DNA of 63,714 bases, counting the filler, from Perkinsus chesapeaki ATCC PRA-425 (Eukaryota; Protista; Perkinsozoa), in assembly GCA_013115145.1 (NCBI GenBank). It is 6 parts of 6 records of this genome, joined end to end, with 100 filler letters (N's around TTAATTAATTAA, not from the genome) between each part and the next. Parts side by side here need not be neighbours in the genome. Positions count along the whole stretch, not along the records: positions 31,579 to 57,572 come from JAAPAO010000514.1; 5 more parts are not named here. The stretch is one strand, 5' to 3'. The notes under the pieces are model-generated. The model did no database searches. It worked only from the letters and a program-made list of their open reading frames with translations, and was not told the origin of the DNA. Within the stretch, counting starts at the first letter, position 1. Every line of letters starts with the position of its first letter. Shown in pieces: positions 41,300-53,942 of this stretch. The position numbers and the translations under genes are program-made.

Positions 41300-44200
41300 T
41301 GATAATGGTAAAGCTATGTCACCGTCAGTGTTGAGTTCAATACAGTAAGCTGAAGCTCAGTTCCCGAACATTGCATTCCTCTCATTTTTCAAACTTTCTG
41401 TTCCGGGAAGGCTTCAAGAAGTTGAGACGAGAAGGCTCGTATTTGCCCCGTTGAGGTTAATTCCCGCTGGTTTTGCATAATCTGTTTTATGAAGACTAAA
41501 TCTCCATGGAAGCGCATTCTACAAATTATTCACCGGCATCGAAATTACGTAAATCTGATAACCCTAATGTTACCTATAATCCCTCTCACTCTCGACTTAT
41601 TATAATAACTAAACTATTAAAATTTTACCACCATTAGCTTCTGCTCCTCGGATTAAGCATCTTGGAGTAGTTGTTAACGAACCCTTCTGACTTTTTAGCG
41701 ATATTTGGAAAATTGTTGGTAACCGCGTAAGTCGTAAGCCGGAAGCATTGTTGACGAAAGCTGCATTGAGGGGCTGGCGAAAGTATGTTAATAGGAAAAG
41801 GCTTCTCTGGAGAAACAGGTATTTTCGTGGCGCGTGACTTGAGCTTCGACTCGGCCTTATAGGATTGTCGTATCAGCTAGAGGCCGGTTCCGGTATAAGC
41901 GTGATGTGATGCTTGGATGGTATGGTTACACTCACAGTGAGGAAATGATGGAATTGAGAAGAAGGCGAGAGGAGTTTATTAAAATGGTGAGGTGGGATTT
42001 ATTCAGGAATTGCAAATACACAAAGAGACTGCAAAATCCACGTAGGCTCATCTCCGAGCAATTTTTATGTCGGCTCAGTTCTGGATACTAAAGCTGGAAC
42101 TTCGGCAAATAATATATGTTATTGTACTTGTAGTTTGTAATTGTTCCTCACAGGTAGCCGATAGACATCACCATTTGGCTGCCTCTGCGATGTTCTCGGC
42201 TTGGGTGTCGTTAGTGTATCGAGGAAAAATGAAGAGGTTACGAAATAACAGAGCCGAGGCTTATGCTGTTCTAAGGATATTGGAAAAAGCATGGCAAATG
42301 TGGCAACAGTGAGTGACGGTTTAACGGCGTGAAGCTCCAAAGGCGTGAACGAACTTTCCATGATGGAATATCTAATTTTCGCTGAGATGGAATGTCAATG
42401 TCGAGGTTTCGGAGTTCCGATCAATCTTAAGTGTCTGCTGTCGGTGTATCAGTTATACGTCCGACCGTACCCGTCTGGCATCCCTTGAATGTCTTTGTGA
42501 GCATCGGTGGGCTCAAAGGACTAAAGAAGAGTACATCAAAAGGTGGCAGCAAGCAGCGGACATGTCGGCACGAATTAGGAAAATTACGAACAATTTCTCA
42601 ACCAGAATGAAACAGAAAAGAGGAATTAAGGCGCTGCGGAGAGCAGTATTGCGATCTCGCCACATTGAGGAGATTAGGAGACAGATTTTGTGTGCAAAAG
42701 CGCGCGCCGTGGTGATCGATTTGAGAGAATGGACGCGAGAAAGAAGTCACAAGAGAATGAATAGGGCGTTGGCGAGAAAGATGTTGACCATTTGGCGGAG
42801 TGAAATTAGAAGAAAAATCAAGCTTGAAGATTCTCGGCATATTCTTGAATCTTTGAGGTGCCGTCGACTGAAGCGATCGGCGTGCGAGAATTGGCTTGAC
42901 CTCACCAGAAAGGAAATAAGCGCTGCAAGATATGCCGTTCGTAGGCTGTTGGAAATTGTGTGGGCTAAATGGACTTGCACGGTGAAGCATTCTTGCGTGT
43001 TGGCGGCCTTCTTAACCTGGCGTGAGAGGCTCGCCCGGGTTCCGAGGGAGCTAGCGCGGGTGCGGCTCAGGAGGGCATTTGGCGGCTGGTTGCTGAGATG
43101 TGTTGATATGAAACGGTCGGAAAGGCAAGGCATCGAGTGTCGAAATATGCACGACAATGTTATGAAATTATCGGTGTTGTTGAAGTGGCAGAGGCTTCGA
43201 CTTTTATGGGAAGTGGCGCGGAGAATGGCATCAGGCGGTCTGAAGAGGAGAGCGTTGATTGGATGGAAAGACGAGATGAAAATACGTAAATTGGAGAAAA
43301 GACGGGATAGGAAAATTGGTAGGATCTTAGCGGAGCGAAGCAGCCGAATTCATTTTTATGGGTGGCATGATCTCTGCAGAGTGAGCGATTTCAGAAGAGT
43401 GTTGGAGTTTCGAAGGAAACGGAAATTTATGAATTTATTTCGAGATCTTGTGGAAGATAGAAAATATTGGAGACAGCTCGATCGTGGAGCTGGTGGGAAA
43501 TATTTTACGAAATTGATAGGCGCGTCAATGAGGGGAATGCAGATGTGTGTGGCGTGGCACCGACGGGGCCGGGAGGAAGCGAAGAGGAAGCTTGCAAGAA
43601 GTTTATGCAGGAAATGGTTCGGAAAATGGATTGAAGTTTTGCCGATTTTGCGATGTGAAAATAGCCGGTGGATGGTAGCGGTTAAGCTTTCGTGTGAGGT
43701 GTTGATGGGGAGGGGGTTCAGAGGGTTGAAGGAATTTAAAATGAGACGAATGTCCGAAAAAGATCAAGTGAGGCGAGCTCAAGTGGTAGTTATGAAATTG
43801 AGAGCACTACAAAGTTTGGCCATCTGGAGGGGATGGAAGAATCGTAGGAAGATTCAATGGCAGGTAAGCTGCTTCCGGGTAGGAGTATCCTTAGCAGTTC
43901 CTCAACCTTTTCATTTGTTATTTTATTATTTTCCGAATCCTCGTGGAATATGCATCAGTCGGTCGGTTTTCGGAGGTTTGTTTTTTTGTGCAACTCTCGT
44001 ACGGGGAATTACCTTTGGACGGGTATTGAAGGAAAACGCTGCAATGCTGAAGGAATTAAGTTTCATTTGTTGGTGTTGTTCTAATAACAGAGGTCATTCC
44101 AAAGAATATTATTAGATTTCAGGCATAAGTTGAATAATTATTATTTAGATTCCTCAATAAGTCGATGCGTGCTTTGTTTAAGGTCTCGTCTCATCCTCCC

Positions 44201-48502: not shown

Positions 48503-49245
48503 TGAAGCCTGATTCAATCCTAGCCAGCCTTGTATCATCAGTTTTATATACCAATGACATTGAGTTTTCAAGTAGTCCCTAAAGATGGAACTTTGTGAAT
48601 GTACTTCCGTAACGGAATGGACAGTTCGTCAGACAGTTCGTGACACTCTAAACCAAGCAATGGTACGACGCTATCAGACGTAGCCGAATTCAGCCTCACG
48701 GAACTGTGTTCGGTTTCGAAGTGAGAGGATATCGGGAGAATCGGGGAGTGTTTCTAGTAGAAGATACAGTGGAATAAATTTGACGTAAAATATGTTACTA
48801 AGAAATGTGACATGAGATTTCGTTCCTGCTGCTACTGCTCCTACAAGACTCGTGCCCTTGAAACTCAATCAGCATCAAGCAATCAGATAAATGAATAAGC
48901 GCACCGGTAGTACAGAATAAACAACAAGATACAATACGATCATACTAGGTGTGCAAAGGTATTAATGTCATTGAAGTAGCTGGGACCCAAAGTAAGGGCA
49001 GACCTAGACCACACCAAGGGCCACGAATCCAAGTCTCCACAGTGGCGGAAGCCACCCATAGAAGACCTTCGCCCAGTTACGACGGTGACTCGTGCAAATG
49101 AGGAAGGATGAAGGCACGTACATGCTACGAACGTTGTGGATGCGCTGTGACGAAGCAACGCAGAGAAACTCTGAGTAGATTCGTAAAGCATGTTAATCGG
49201 CTCGTCATGCATTACAATGTCCGTCAGATAGTACACAGACACCTA

Positions 49246-49972
49246 TCAGCGACGAATAACAATGTCGGAGCAAGTAGCAAAGTAAATGCCCGTAAACTTC
49301 CACATATAAAAGATGGTGTAAATACCGACAGTTAAGTTACGTGGAATCGTAATAGTAGCAGATGTAGTATCGATAGTGACACTCTTATTGTAGTAGGGAT
49401 GACATTCTTCCAATGTGGTGAAGTCATCAAACGAAGGATCATCCTTGTATGGAGCGATCTTGATCTGCACGCAGGTGCCTAACAAAAGGACACATCTGAA
49501 AATCAGATGACTTATAGAGTATTGTTACCATCCGACACAGAGTTGGTGTGTCCATTTCCCATCCAAGAGATATGAAGCTTACCACCTGACAAAAAGACTA
49601 TTAATATAGAAGAGCTAAATGCAGGCCATCTCGTCACCTCTGGTCACTTCAGCACGGAAATCAGTGTTAGGTGCCCCTGGAGAGCCAGCTAGCCGACAAG
49701 GTCTCTGGGAGCTCGCATCCAGAGGCTTATAAGGTGGTGGGTAGTTCTCGCACTGACTTAGGTTTAATGGAGCCGGACAGATTGGACGCTGAAACATAAC
49801 ATGACAAATTAAGCAATAAATCACTTACTGCATAATAATGATCTGGATGAGCATGTGTATTTGGACCATGTCTTGGCAGCCCATCTTTAATATCACCTCT
49901 GAGATTGAATACCCAACTATGACCAGCGGCCTCCACAATAATGATTAATATACTTGGGAGTTGATGTATCAT
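49246..49972 (-). CDS. Secreted protein with predicted N-terminal His (LPMO-like), paralog 1
   Basis: Four exons: signal-like MIHQLPSILIIIVEAAG then HSWVFNL; WMGNGHTN; GIYTIFYMWKFTGIYFATCSDIVI. Confidence 0.75.
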
Positions 49973-50879
49973 ATGTTTGTATAACATCACACTCTGCGCA
50001 GAATAGTAAAGCACAGGTCACTCGCCGAACACATTCAGAACGTAGCGAATGTTGGCAGTCTCAAACGGATTGCTTTCCTTTTAGTCATATGCCATCCACA
50101 TTCTTCTAAATACTTATCCAGTAACCTCAAGTATGGAGTGGGTAACAAGGGGTGCCACTGAAGCATTTCGAGTAATCTTCGCTGTGCAGCTATTCAGGGC
50201 GTTTCCATGCCCCCATAAGGCATCCGCTAGAACCGTATACACTGAGGCCTACCAGTTGCGAGCATTTACGAGAGTATTCACGCCAGCGCCCCACATTTCT
50301 GGCGTAACATGAATGAAGAGCTCGTTAGGCAGATATCAGCCGCGGCAGGCTTGCGCTTGGGATAGCCAACTCGCTCGCCTCCCGGTCACACATTCACGGA
50401 CCAAATGAACAAGTTGCTAGCAGCAAAACCAGGACCCTCGTGCCATACAGGACACGCTCTCCCGCAACGGGCCCTTAGAGCTTCTAGTGACCTTTTTATC
50501 GTCTTACAGCGGTCAGACAAGGTCAGTACTGAGCCTAGTGTGAAAACGAGGATCATAGTATCAGCTGGTGACAGGGGAGTGAAATGTCCCCCATTCTTGA
50601 AGTTGTAGACTCCAAGAAATATATATGCCTGGATCATCTCCACGCCATGTTGCCGTCAATTCATCATCCTCAGTACCATGCTGGCAACACAGCTCAAGGA
50701 GCGGGTGTCTTTCCTAGGCAGATTTTACCTCCCGGAAACGCTCTTTCTTGCAAAGTTTGTTAGCTAATTTATCAATTCAGAGCGAGTCTTAAGGGATTTG
50801 ATATGAGAGTTCAGGAGTGATACGTTCTGGAAACTGTTGCTTGCTCGTCGTTCATAATGAAGCGAGTCAACAAACAAAT

Positions 50880-51090
50880 CTGTCCTGAGCTATATCGAGT
50901 TGGGCTATACCAGTCTGTCCTGAGCTATATTGCTTTGGTCTGGGCTATACCAGTCTGTCCTGGGCTATATCGAGTTGGGCTATACCAGTCTGTCCTGAGC
51001 TATATCGAGTTGGGCTATACCAGTCTGTTCTGAGCTATATCGAGTTGGGCTATACCAGTCTGTTCTGAGCTATATTGATTTGGTCTGGGC
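50880..51090. repeat. ~35-bp tandem repeat (about 6 copies, two unit variants)
   Basis: CCAGTCTGTCCTGAGCTATATCGAGTTGGGCTATA, with variant ..GCTATATTGMTTTGGTCTGGGCT.. Confidence 0.9.
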
Positions 51091-51764
51091 TGTTGTCGAT
51101 TAGATCTTGAAATGATGTAATACCGGATAATCCCGGTCCGAGTTAAGGGACCGGCCAGTGAGTCGTTGACTGTTAGCTGGCCACCGTAGTGCAGTCCTCC
51201 CGTTACCAACCGTCCTGGAGACTGAATGTTGCTTGGGCCATCTGCTTTCGGCGGTGGTGATCGATCTGTTTGTCACCTTTAAACGCATTAGAAGGCACCC
51301 ACCAGCGATTAATCTAGGGTCGTTTACTCAGCAAGCAACCGTACTACCCACTATGATGGTCGGTCTAATTGTCTCATTACTTGACGTCTGTTGGATCCGC
51401 TAAAAGTTGGTGCAAGATGGCCATCTGGATAGAGTCGCGCAAGTCTATCCAAGTCCTCTCTCGCTTCTCAGCGGGGATTACTTAACACTATGAAAACTCA
51501 ACTGTACAGAAATGGCAAATTCGAAACCCTCGGAAAATTGCATTACATGCTGAGCTAGATCCAATACGACGACACGAGGGAAGTGATAATGAAAAAAGTA
51601 GTGATTCCGAAAGGTAACGAACACGGTGGAAGCCTTGTGGATGCGCTGTGACGAAACAACGCAGAGATACCTGCACTTAAACAGTAACTCTGAGTAGATT
51701 CGTAAAGCATGTTAATCGGCTCGTCATGCATTAGAATGTCCGTCAGATAGTACACAGACACCTA

Positions 51765-52493
51765 TCAGCGACGAATAACAATGTCGGAGCAAGTAGCAAA
51801 GTAAATGCCCGTAAACTTCCACATGTAGAAGATGGTGTAAGTGCCAGGGGGTAGACAAGGAGGAATCTTAACGGTAGCAGATGTAGTATCGATAGCAACC
51901 CTTTTATTGTAGTAGGGATGACATTCTTCCAATGTGGTGAAGTCATCAAACGAAGGATCATCCTTGTATGGAGCGATCTTGATCTGCACGCATGTGCCTA
52001 ACAGAAGGACACATCTGAAAGTCAGACGAATTGGATTATTATGATTACCATCGGAGACAGAGTTGGTGTGCCCATTTCCCATCCAAGAGATATGAAGCTT
52101 ACCACCTGAAGGAAATACAAATAGAACGCGTCGCTCGACCGCAGACGATTTCATCACCTCTGGTCACTTCAGCACGGTTATTAGTGTTAGGTGCCCCTGG
52201 AGAGCCAGCTAGCCGACAAGGTCTCTGAGAGCTCGCATCCAGAGGCTTATACGGTGGCGGATAGTCCTCGCACTGACTTAGCTTTAATGGGGCCGGACAG
52301 ATGGGACGCTGAAAGTATAATGTAACAAGTTGGGCAATAAATCACTTACCGCAAAGTAATGGTCAGGAAGCGCGTGCGAGTTTGCACCATGTCTTGGTAA
52401 GCCACTTTTAATATCACCTATGAGATTGAATACCCAACTATGACCAGCGGCCTCCACAATAATGATGAGGATACTCAGGATGCGAGGAATCAT
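51765..52493 (-). CDS. Secreted protein with predicted N-terminal His (LPMO-like), paralog 2
   Basis: Near-identical exon structure and motifs to 49246-49972; 5' and 3' flanks are also homologous. Confidence 0.75.
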
Positions 52494-53942
52494 CGAAACA
52501 CGTATAATATTGGACTGAGCGTAGAATAGTGAAAAGGGCCTATCCCCGAGCACAGTCAGCACACAGCGAATATTAGCTAAGAAACGGTTCATGCATGGGA
52601 TTGAGGAGAGGGTCGGTAAGGACATAGATCAAGACCTTAATACCGGTAAACCGGCAAGTAACTTTTGGCGAGCTCGCGGCGGTTGCTCCGTCGCATTATG
52701 TCGGCAATCCGATGAGATCAATACAATACGATTTAGTACGTGCACGAATCCCAGAAGGCGCATGCGTGCAGGGCTGCCTGGGCTGTTGGGTAGACCCTAA
52801 ATGAGCCCAACTGAACAAGTGCCGTATCACACAAACAGCAGACGGGGGCTCGAATGCAGAAAATACTCGACGACCTCGTCAATCGCTACAACACCTATCT
52901 TTACTTAAAATAACCTCAGGAAAGACCAGTCAGAACCGATATGGTCGCTGTAATACACCAACACCCACAATGAGTAGGATAAGTGACACCAAGGTTCAAG
53001 GAGACTTCAACCAGGAACCAACAGACGACAACCAAGGAACCTTTTAAGGCAAACAGCCAACTATGGGGTCCGTGCGGCGAACTTATTGGGTTCATGTGGG
53101 TGACGTATATTTGGTGGGAACCCTCATTGGAAGAATCCTGAGTGGATGAGAAAGCTTGACCGATAACCGCTGCCAAGGATTCAAAGCCTCTGGATCTCTG
53201 CTGGGTTAGCAATCATGCTGGTGAGGCTTTGCTCATTTCACGTCATACCGGTGGCGCCGAATGTGCATGCGTGCATGAACAATTGCATTTATAAGATTAA
53301 GCTCGCACGGATAGAAAGCCTTTGTTGCAGTCTCCTTCTTTATATTGTGTTCATTGTTATGAACGAATTGACAACGAAATAACATATCGCAAAGAAGAAT
53401 GATAATAATGTTGTTCTAAACCGTGAAACAATCGATCAAGCTATGGGCCCCAGCTCCACGGCCGCACAGTGCGGGCCGCAGTAGCAGGAAGGTGTACGAT
53501 CTTGACACACCACAGCGAGCTGATGTTCTTTACACAGTTGTTTCCCGCATCATCGCCCATCCCGTTTGGTTGGGTACGAAGGTGACCTGCCTGTTCATAG
53601 AGCAAATACGATGTCTCATCGAAGCGCATGGTGACGCCCCTAGTCCCCGGCATGGCCGCTGGCCACAATGTTGCCTCCACCACGGAACCGGGTTAAAGGT
53701 GTACCGGAACAAGCTCCATTTGAAGGCCATGTGGCATCAGGATCTCGGAAAGGCATAATAATTCAATGTGTTGTTCGGCAATGCGGAGAAAATGCGGAAT
53801 CCGCATATGTTTGTGCATGCGTGCACGTTTTTGCGCGGCTCGCTTTTTGTTAGTGTATGCGTTTTGAAGTCTTAATAGTTCGGTCGTTAATAGGCGTGCA
53901 TGTTATATCTGGAACACAGAGACAAGATTGATAATGGAAACG

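Follow-up and report, generated by a model that had tools for sequence, protein, structure and literature searches.

A tandem pair of predicted secreted proteins resembling lytic polysaccharide monooxygenases in Perkinsus chesapeaki, and their relatives among marine protists

Lytic polysaccharide monooxygenases (LPMOs) play a central part in turning over recalcitrant polysaccharides, and several of them act as virulence factors. The AA11 LPMOs are chitin-active fungal enzymes, the fungal X325/Bim1 proteins combine an LPMO-like fold with copper binding at the surface, and DUF7492 (PF24320) is a large, mainly ascomycete family that is uncharacterised. Here, we compare these and other LPMO families with a tandem gene pair of Perkinsus chesapeaki, an alveolate that parasitizes clams. 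The window (i.e., the whole 63,714-nucleotide stretch of DNA that was analyzed) includes contig JAAPAO010000514.1 of assembly GCA_013115145.1 at positions 31579-57572 (25,994 bases), and the pair lies within it at 49246-52493. The original prediction had described the pair as secreted proteins with an LPMO-like histidine-brace signature, and we indeed find two intact four-exon genes there, each encoding 194 aa. We consider it likely that each copy encodes a secreted, single-domain LPMO-like histidine-brace protein that would bind copper and cleave beta-glucans oxidatively. A literature search of limited coverage returned no paper on LPMOs in Perkinsus or alveolate parasites, on LPMO-type enzymes of diatoms, on DUF7492, or on the family shared by Perkinsus and diatoms that is described below.

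The predicted structure places the protein among the LPMOs. We used AlphaFold (AF2) on A2, a 31-sequence alignment of mature domains in which the members outside Perkinsus are 32-48% identical to the query, and obtained a model of the mature protein with a predicted local distance difference test score (pLDDT) of 92.9 and a predicted template modeling score (pTM) of 0.88. This model supersedes the one built from a shallow alignment of eight Perkinsus sequences, which had a pLDDT of 65.5 and yielded weak Foldseek matches (E 0.01-0.3). Comparison of the A2 model with the PDB by Foldseek, a check proposed together with the original prediction, returned 56 matches at E<=1e-3, nearly all to LPMOs (AA9, AA10, AA11, and AA16), with a best E of 7e-6 and a template modeling (TM) score of ~0.5. 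In addition, a VIA-align search, exhaustive over 48,161 representative PDB chains, found 23 chains at Z>=8, and all 23 are LPMO or LPMO-like; below them, at Z<=7.6, come unrelated beta-sandwiches. The highest score was that of AA15 (5MSZ, Z 12.0), followed by AA10 (3UAM and 4OY7, Z 11.0 and 10.9), AA11 (4MAI and 7P3U, Z 11.0 and 10.7), AA9 (Z 10-10.7), AA13 (Z 10.0), fusolin (Z 9.8), X325 (6IBH, Z 9.4), AA14 (Z 8.9), and AA16 (Z 8.8). CAZy also includes a family AA18 (PMC13431639). Scores for the LPMO families compared here tie to within about one Z unit, and the structural comparison therefore identifies the superfamily without singling out one family.

Every LPMO alignment begins at residue 1 of the model, which pairs with the copper-binding His of the target; on the target side, this is mature residue 1 or the first residue after the signal peptide (e.g., 28 in CBP21 and 35 in CelS2). 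When the ESM Atlas was searched by shape, AA9, LPMO_10, and unnamed protist clusters were retrieved at TM 0.61-0.70, and by language-model features the neighbors were "Chitin-binding type-4" and LPMO clusters (0.92-0.94), a BIM1-like cluster (0.90), and DUF7492 (0.84). As modeled, the protein is an LPMO-type immunoglobulin-like beta-sandwich.

A histidine brace depends on where the mature protein begins. In both copies, the leader has a basic start, nine hydrophobic residues, and E-A-A-G, and is followed directly by His-Ser-Trp (HSW; M...IIIVEAAG/HSWVFNL, with the slash at the predicted cleavage site), so that removal of the 17-aa leader would leave a mature protein of 177 aa. For cleavage, we relied on the -3/-1 rule and on conservation, using 35 homologues with an initial Met and a leader of 10 residues or more. 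Without exception, position -1 is Gly, Ala, or Ser, position -3 is one of Ala, Val, Ser, Thr, Cys, and Ile, and HSW comes immediately afterward; the median leader is 18-19 residues long and its hydrophobic core is strong. The fit of the predicted cleavage to the classical -3/-1 pattern supports His as residue 1 of the mature protein, as had been proposed. The other details on which the original prediction was built (a 17-aa leader ending in AAG before HSW, a His within WMGNGH, several Cys, and the C-terminal strand) are likewise present in both copies.

Conservation within A2 singles out the positions expected of a copper site (residues are given in mature numbering throughout). Both copies read ...ISWMGNGHTNSVSDGTC... 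and end ...YTIFYMWKFTGIYFATCSDIVIRR, and in their C-terminal strand, Y-F-A-T-C-S-D-I, Phe167 stands three residues before Cys170. Fifteen positions are invariant in A2, namely Ser2, Arg17, Cys35, Cys44, Pro61, Cys62, Trp89, Gly93, His94, Phe120, Pro146, Trp160, Phe162, Cys170, and Asp172. His1 and Trp3 are conserved at >=90%, and the single row lacking His1 is a sequence trimmed one residue too far. Position 167 is Phe or Tyr in 31 of 31 members, and the conserved Cys residues number six (35, 44, 62, 103, 126, and 170). Across these 31 homologues, the pattern of conserved His1, His94, aromatic residue, and Cys is far beyond what chance would give. Two residues before position 167, P. chesapeaki has Ile, P. 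marinus and P. olseni have Val, and the remaining members have mostly Phe.

Three divergent proteins with complete N-termini (P0049, P0050, and P0057) have His1 replaced by Lys, Lys, and Gly, respectively, and in the same three His94 gives way to Leu, Leu, and Asp or Asn. Wherever an aligned member has a complete N-terminus, the two brace His are either both present or both missing, and such joint loss is the pattern expected if both residues form one site. An LPMO-like histidine-brace protein is thus supported by the fold search, by the three conserved positions of the predicted copper site, and by the N-terminal placement behind a leader.

No family reached its threshold when the window proteins were scanned against Pfam, and for the exons and open reading frames the scan gave nothing beyond an AA9 match at chance level. 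AA9 (PF03443) matched at E 0.011-0.067 with 13-16 bits (13.5-16.1, the window protein having 13.5) against a cut-off of 27.8, and LPMO_10 (PF03067, which covers AA10 and AA15) gave no match to the window proteins even at E<=10 and matched only one of the 31 A2 members (E 0.18). Because no Pfam LPMO family or any other reaches its threshold, the assignment to an "unassigned family" in the original prediction holds. The family is, as judged from sequence, a distinct LPMO-like lineage of marine protists.

More sensitive comparisons point from this lineage toward two named families. With the A2 profile, AA11 was the only solved family reached in the PDB (AoAA11 of Aspergillus oryzae, 4MAH, E 0.001, 22 bits; AfAA11B, 9EXJ, E 0.0087); a PDB profile search with eight Perkinsus sequences gave zero matches. 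In the alignment of A2 with AoAA11, Phe/Tyr167 pairs exactly with Tyr140, His94 lies no more than one residue from His60, and the Cys coincide at four positions (P-C, G-S/T-C, C-P, and x-x-C). Tyr140 is reported to occupy the axial ligand position of AoAA11 (Hemsworth et al. 2014), and its numbering is consistent with the alignment. As for DUF7492, 23 of the 31 relatives match it at E<1 (best 2e-5) over their last ~50 residues only, scoring 16-22 bits against a cut-off of 27, and P0001 (the database protein of copy 2) had no DUF7492 match in the Pfam scan. The nearest families by sequence are AA11 and DUF7492, the latter through sub-threshold scores.

A sister group further ties these families together. 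P0063, a distant match of the profile search, is the only one above the DUF7492 threshold (31.1 bits), and its relatives start with a leader followed by HSWL-C-D, contain A-K-N-H, and end in G-E-F-Y-N-S-C-A-D. Many proteins of this marine group (P0116-P0127, P0124, and P0130) carry CBM1 (PF00734), a carbohydrate-binding module (CBM), and some carry a GH5 cellulase (PF00150), WW (PF00397), or PF27624 domain. Alignment of the group with A2 by hhalign gave 98.8% probability (E 6e-17) over 106 columns, in which the second His and the aromatic-x-x-C-x-D strand are paired. This homology, together with the DUF7492 score, suggests that DUF7492, the marine group linked to CBM1, and the family of Perkinsus and diatoms branch from a single HSW-type LPMO-like assemblage, with AA11 as the closest relative that has been characterised. 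The link to DUF7492 is drawn from Pfam scores only, the alignments being made up of the Perkinsus/diatom family and the marine sister group, and the fusions of the P0063 group to CBM1, GH5, WW, and PF27624 suggest that DUF7492 as a whole may be LPMO-like. The uncharacterised fungal HSW family mentioned in the original prediction is most likely DUF7492, given the sub-threshold matches of the relatives and the passing score in the sister group.

The relatives themselves point to marine plankton and to polysaccharides. Apart from Perkinsus proteins, a word search retrieved a single JGI contig and a single MMETSP transcript. A profile search over 1.84 billion representatives yielded 60 proteins at E<=1e-3, 47 of them at E<=1e-10; the named sources are Perkinsus olseni, P. 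marinus, and P. chesapeaki and the diatoms Skeletonema marinoi, S. dohrnii, and S. menzelii, and the remaining sequences are MMETSP transcripts and metagenome or Logan contigs. Zero relatives were found in the viral contigs searched. Most relatives are 250-765 aa long, and in nearly all of them the homologous domain sits at the N-terminus right after the leader and is followed by Ser/Thr/Pro-rich linkers. Fusion to a glycoside hydrolase (GH) of family GH16 is seen in the Skeletonema proteins (P0012, S. marinoi KAK1735218.1, 713 aa) and in P0042, of 562 aa. There, the HSW domain is N-terminal and GH16 makes up the C-terminal half, and the source annotation names GH16 only. The UniRef name of the P. 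marinus homologue and of one P. olseni homologue is "Chitin-binding type-4 domain-containing protein", and thus the LPMO likeness had already been picked up by automatic pipelines; the P. chesapeaki proteins are named "hypothetical".

Some relatives have further peculiarities. In many of the longer ones (P0013, P0024, P0026, P0031, P0035, P0036, and P0039), a short conserved Cys-containing stretch without a Pfam match lies past the Ser/Thr/Pro linker (e.g., ...LLLDYGTVDC... or ...C..YGDP.K.C...) and may be an undescribed binding module. P0008 (P. chesapeaki FOL47_008617, 228 aa) and P0009 (P. olseni FOZ60_005903, 186 aa) are family-like up to about residue 175 and unrelated thereafter, and P0009 additionally misses part of the N-terminal half; both resemble products of gene-model errors or of frameshifts more than genuine variants.

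Set beside the described systems one at a time, the Perkinsus protein shares some features with each and departs from each in others. With AoAA11 it aligns from His1 onward at a root-mean-square deviation (rmsd) of 3.0 over 134 residues, but the identity of the Perkinsus family to AA11 is only ~17%, the X278-type C-terminal module of AA11 is not present in the Perkinsus proteins, and the axial Tyr of AoAA11 is Phe in P. chesapeaki. The second-sphere Glu138 of AA11 (in E-x-Y) corresponds to Ile, Val, or Phe in the Perkinsus/diatom family, whereas the sister group keeps a Glu two residues before its axial Tyr (G-E-F-Y), as AA11 does. AA11 is fungal, whereas the family described here belongs to alveolates and diatoms. 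DUF7492 has in common with this family that the mature protein begins with HSW, contains an N-H motif, and carries Y-x-x-C-A-D toward its C-terminal end, but the N-terminal halves differ: the sister group has HSWL-C-D with extra Cys and is ~15-30 residues longer.

The best structural match, AA15 of Thermobia domestica (TdAA15A, 5MSZ), aligns over 151 residues at an rmsd of 3.9, and many AA10 enzymes have an axial Phe as in the P. chesapeaki proteins; nevertheless, identity to AA15 and AA10 is only 11-16%, and their scores tie within 1 Z unit with those of AA9 and AA11. AA9 shares the aromatic-x-x-C strand, and in Foldseek its best matches have E ~1e-5 and TM ~0.5, but the Perkinsus protein is shorter (177 versus ~220 aa) and lacks the H-x(n)-Q-x-Y second-sphere motif. 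X325 (LaX325, 6IBH) is similar in being a small domain with an LPMO-like fold and an N-terminal His brace, which is predicted in the Perkinsus protein. It differs in that the Perkinsus protein ends two residues past the last conserved strand (…CSDIVIRR), with no tail of the glycosylphosphatidylinositol (GPI) type.

At the level of the locus, the two copies have a common four-exon layout with intact reading frames (Table 1). Each has three introns of 40-52 nt bounded by GT..AG. The spliced product of copy 2 is letter-identical to P0001 (hypothetical protein FOL47_008220, 194 aa), and it was through this record that copy 2 was searched; copy 1 was searched as exons and open reading frames. The public contig record likewise calls each copy as a 194-residue gene, and the pair is flanked by a protein kinase gene and an MgtE gene. 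L002, a 923-bp JGI contig, contains a 77%-identical homologue with an uninterrupted frame from which exactly the three predicted introns are missing. Because L002 lacks them, the splice model has independent support, including the unusual GTGAYG donor of intron 2. An alternative donor for this intron, six codons later (after ...DEIVC), was rejected: copy 1 has no GT there, and P0001 and L002 use GTGAYG. The spliced, transcript-like nature of L002 also indicates that a close homologue of the pair is transcribed.

Table 1. Coordinates of the two genes and of their predicted functional positions (window numbering)
Feature	Position	Strand	Description
Copy 1 gene	49246..49972	-	Exons 49829-49972, 49638-49788, 49529-49585, 49246-49478 (including stop); 194 aa
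Copy 1 signal peptide	49922..49972	-	17 aa, MIHQLPSILIIIVEAAG; ATG five codons upstream would make a 22-aa leader
Copy 1 His1 codon	49919..49921	-	Predicted mature N-terminus, first brace His
Copy 1 His94 codon	49548..49550	-	In WMGNGH, predicted second brace His
Copy 1 Phe167 codon	49279..49281	-	Aromatic residue three before Cys170, predicted axial position
Copy 2 gene	51765..52493	-	Exons 52350-52493, 52158-52308, 52049-52105, 51765-51997 (including stop); 194 aa
Copy 2 signal peptide	52443..52493	-	17 aa, MIPRILSILIIIVEAAG; -3/-1 rule
Copy 2 His1 codon	52440..52442	-	Predicted mature N-terminus, first brace His
Copy 2 His94 codon	52068..52070	-	In WMGNGH, predicted second brace His
Copy 2 Phe167 codon	51798..51800	-	Aromatic residue three before Cys170, predicted axial position

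The duplicated DNA extends over about 49116-49972 and 51617-52493, that is, ~860 nt for each copy, with the copies spaced 2519-2521 nt apart. The encoded proteins agree at 171 of 194 residues (88% identity), the synonymous divergence (dS) between the copies is 0.34, and the ratio of nonsynonymous to synonymous divergence (dN/dS) is 0.19. All 23 amino-acid differences leave the family-invariant positions untouched. The low dN/dS and the sparing of the invariant positions therefore argue that both copies have been kept under purifying selection.

Several smaller features of the locus were also recorded. Loop 143-153 carries 7 of the 23 differences; within it, copy 2 has a seventh, unpaired Cys at residue 148 (P-P-C-L-P; window about 51855-51857), and copy 1 has Asn at the same place as part of an N-L-T glycosylation sequon. 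In-frame upstream ATGs occur on the minus strand of both copies, 44 codons up in copy 2 (52494-52625) and 5 codons up in copy 1 (49973-49987). With the annotated starts, the leaders have the 17 aa typical of the family, which would not be so for the longer form of copy 2. The spacer between the copies contains about six 35-nt tandem repeats at 50874-51091 (unit ...CCAGTCTGTCCTGAGCTATATCGAGTTGGGCTATA...). Elsewhere on the contig, at 42562-44115 on the plus strand, there is an open frame of 517 aa that is very rich in Arg and Lys, has regularly spaced Trp, and lies in a stretch where the GC skew is strongly positive (0.37). An annotated gene of 624 residues, with a product that matches Biopterin_H, overlaps this frame.

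If the proteins work as LPMOs do, cleavage of the leader would expose His1, and the amino group and Nδ1 of this residue would, together with Nε2 of His94, hold one copper ion in a T-shaped brace with Phe167 (Tyr in other species) in the axial position. The fold would be held in place by three disulfides. With a polysaccharide chain placed across the flat face, reduced Cu(I) would then activate O2 or H2O2 and abstract hydrogen from this chain at C1 or C4. A polysaccharide of the beta-glucan type would be the substrate: fusion to GH16 suggests beta-1,3- or mixed-linkage glucans, and the CBM1 and GH5 modules of the sister group suggest cellulose or mannan. The thick wall of the Perkinsus prezoosporangium has been described as cellulose (PMC12127817). 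With these modules and such a wall, our first guess is that the proteins would act on the cellulose-containing wall of the parasite itself as it enlarges or undergoes zoosporulation, and our second is that they would act on host or environmental glycans.

Several observations weigh against this proposal. None of the Pfam LPMO models scores above threshold for the window proteins, and the Perkinsus proteins themselves carry neither a CBM nor a GH module. Moreover, the second-sphere Glu/Gln of AA11 and AA9 is replaced by Ile, Val, or Phe, and catalytic competence is hence not assured. The last two points also lend some weight to another explanation, according to which the proteins are non-catalytic LPMO-like copper-binding proteins for copper acquisition or buffering at the surface, as in fungal X325/Bim1. 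Such a role would agree with the stand-alone Perkinsus members, with the missing second-sphere residue of the whole Perkinsus/diatom family, with the fold and brace signature that X325 shares, and with the BIM1-like cluster among the language-model neighbors. Nonetheless, X325 scores under AA15, AA10, AA11, and AA9, the protein stops at its last beta-strand with neither a C-terminal extension nor a GPI-type tail, and the relatives fused to GH16 as well as the sister group with CBM1 and GH5 have architectures typical of polysaccharide-active enzymes. We therefore regard a purely copper-handling role as rather unlikely, though it deserves more weight than the alternatives that follow.

That the proteins are metal-free secreted beta-sandwiches (an adhesin, a lectin, or a lipid-binding ML-like protein) whose histidines are structural seems very improbable to us. 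Der p 2, NPC2 (ML domain), and Fn3-type sandwiches do appear among the weaker fold matches, but they reach Z<=7.6 at most versus about 9-12 for the 23 LPMO-type chains, and a His at the cleavage site in 35 of 35 leaders, together with the joint loss of the two His, is hard to explain without a brace. We give even less credence to the idea that one or both copies are decaying duplicates or annotation artifacts. The tandem duplication is recent, copy 2 has an extra Cys at 148, and the C-termini of P0008 and P0009 are aberrant; yet the frames of the pair are intact, its introns are canonical GT..AG introns, dN/dS is 0.19 at a dS of 0.34, the 23 differences spare the invariant positions, and the splice pattern is confirmed by the intronless homologue L002. 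A secreted, single-domain LPMO-like protein with a copper-binding histidine brace and a probable oxidative activity on beta-glucans thus remains the reading that we prefer. A bolder version of it, namely that the pair belongs to a new CAZy-level family of active LPMOs that is confined to marine protists (perkinsids, diatoms, and plankton), is linked to AA11 and DUF7492, and loosens either the organism's own wall or host glycans, is put forward tentatively, since we judge it possible but not quite probable.

If copper binding alone were the function, the proteins would represent a protist counterpart of Bim1-type copper uptake in fungi. If a protist histidine-brace family is real, oxidative polysaccharide chemistry would reach into marine plankton and the carbon cycle, in keeping with the links to GH16, CBM1, and GH5, and DUF7492 would gain a concrete functional hypothesis. 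For Perkinsus itself, the pair would provide a testable candidate for how the parasite builds or opens its cellulose-type wall, a step that would matter for its life cycle in bivalves.

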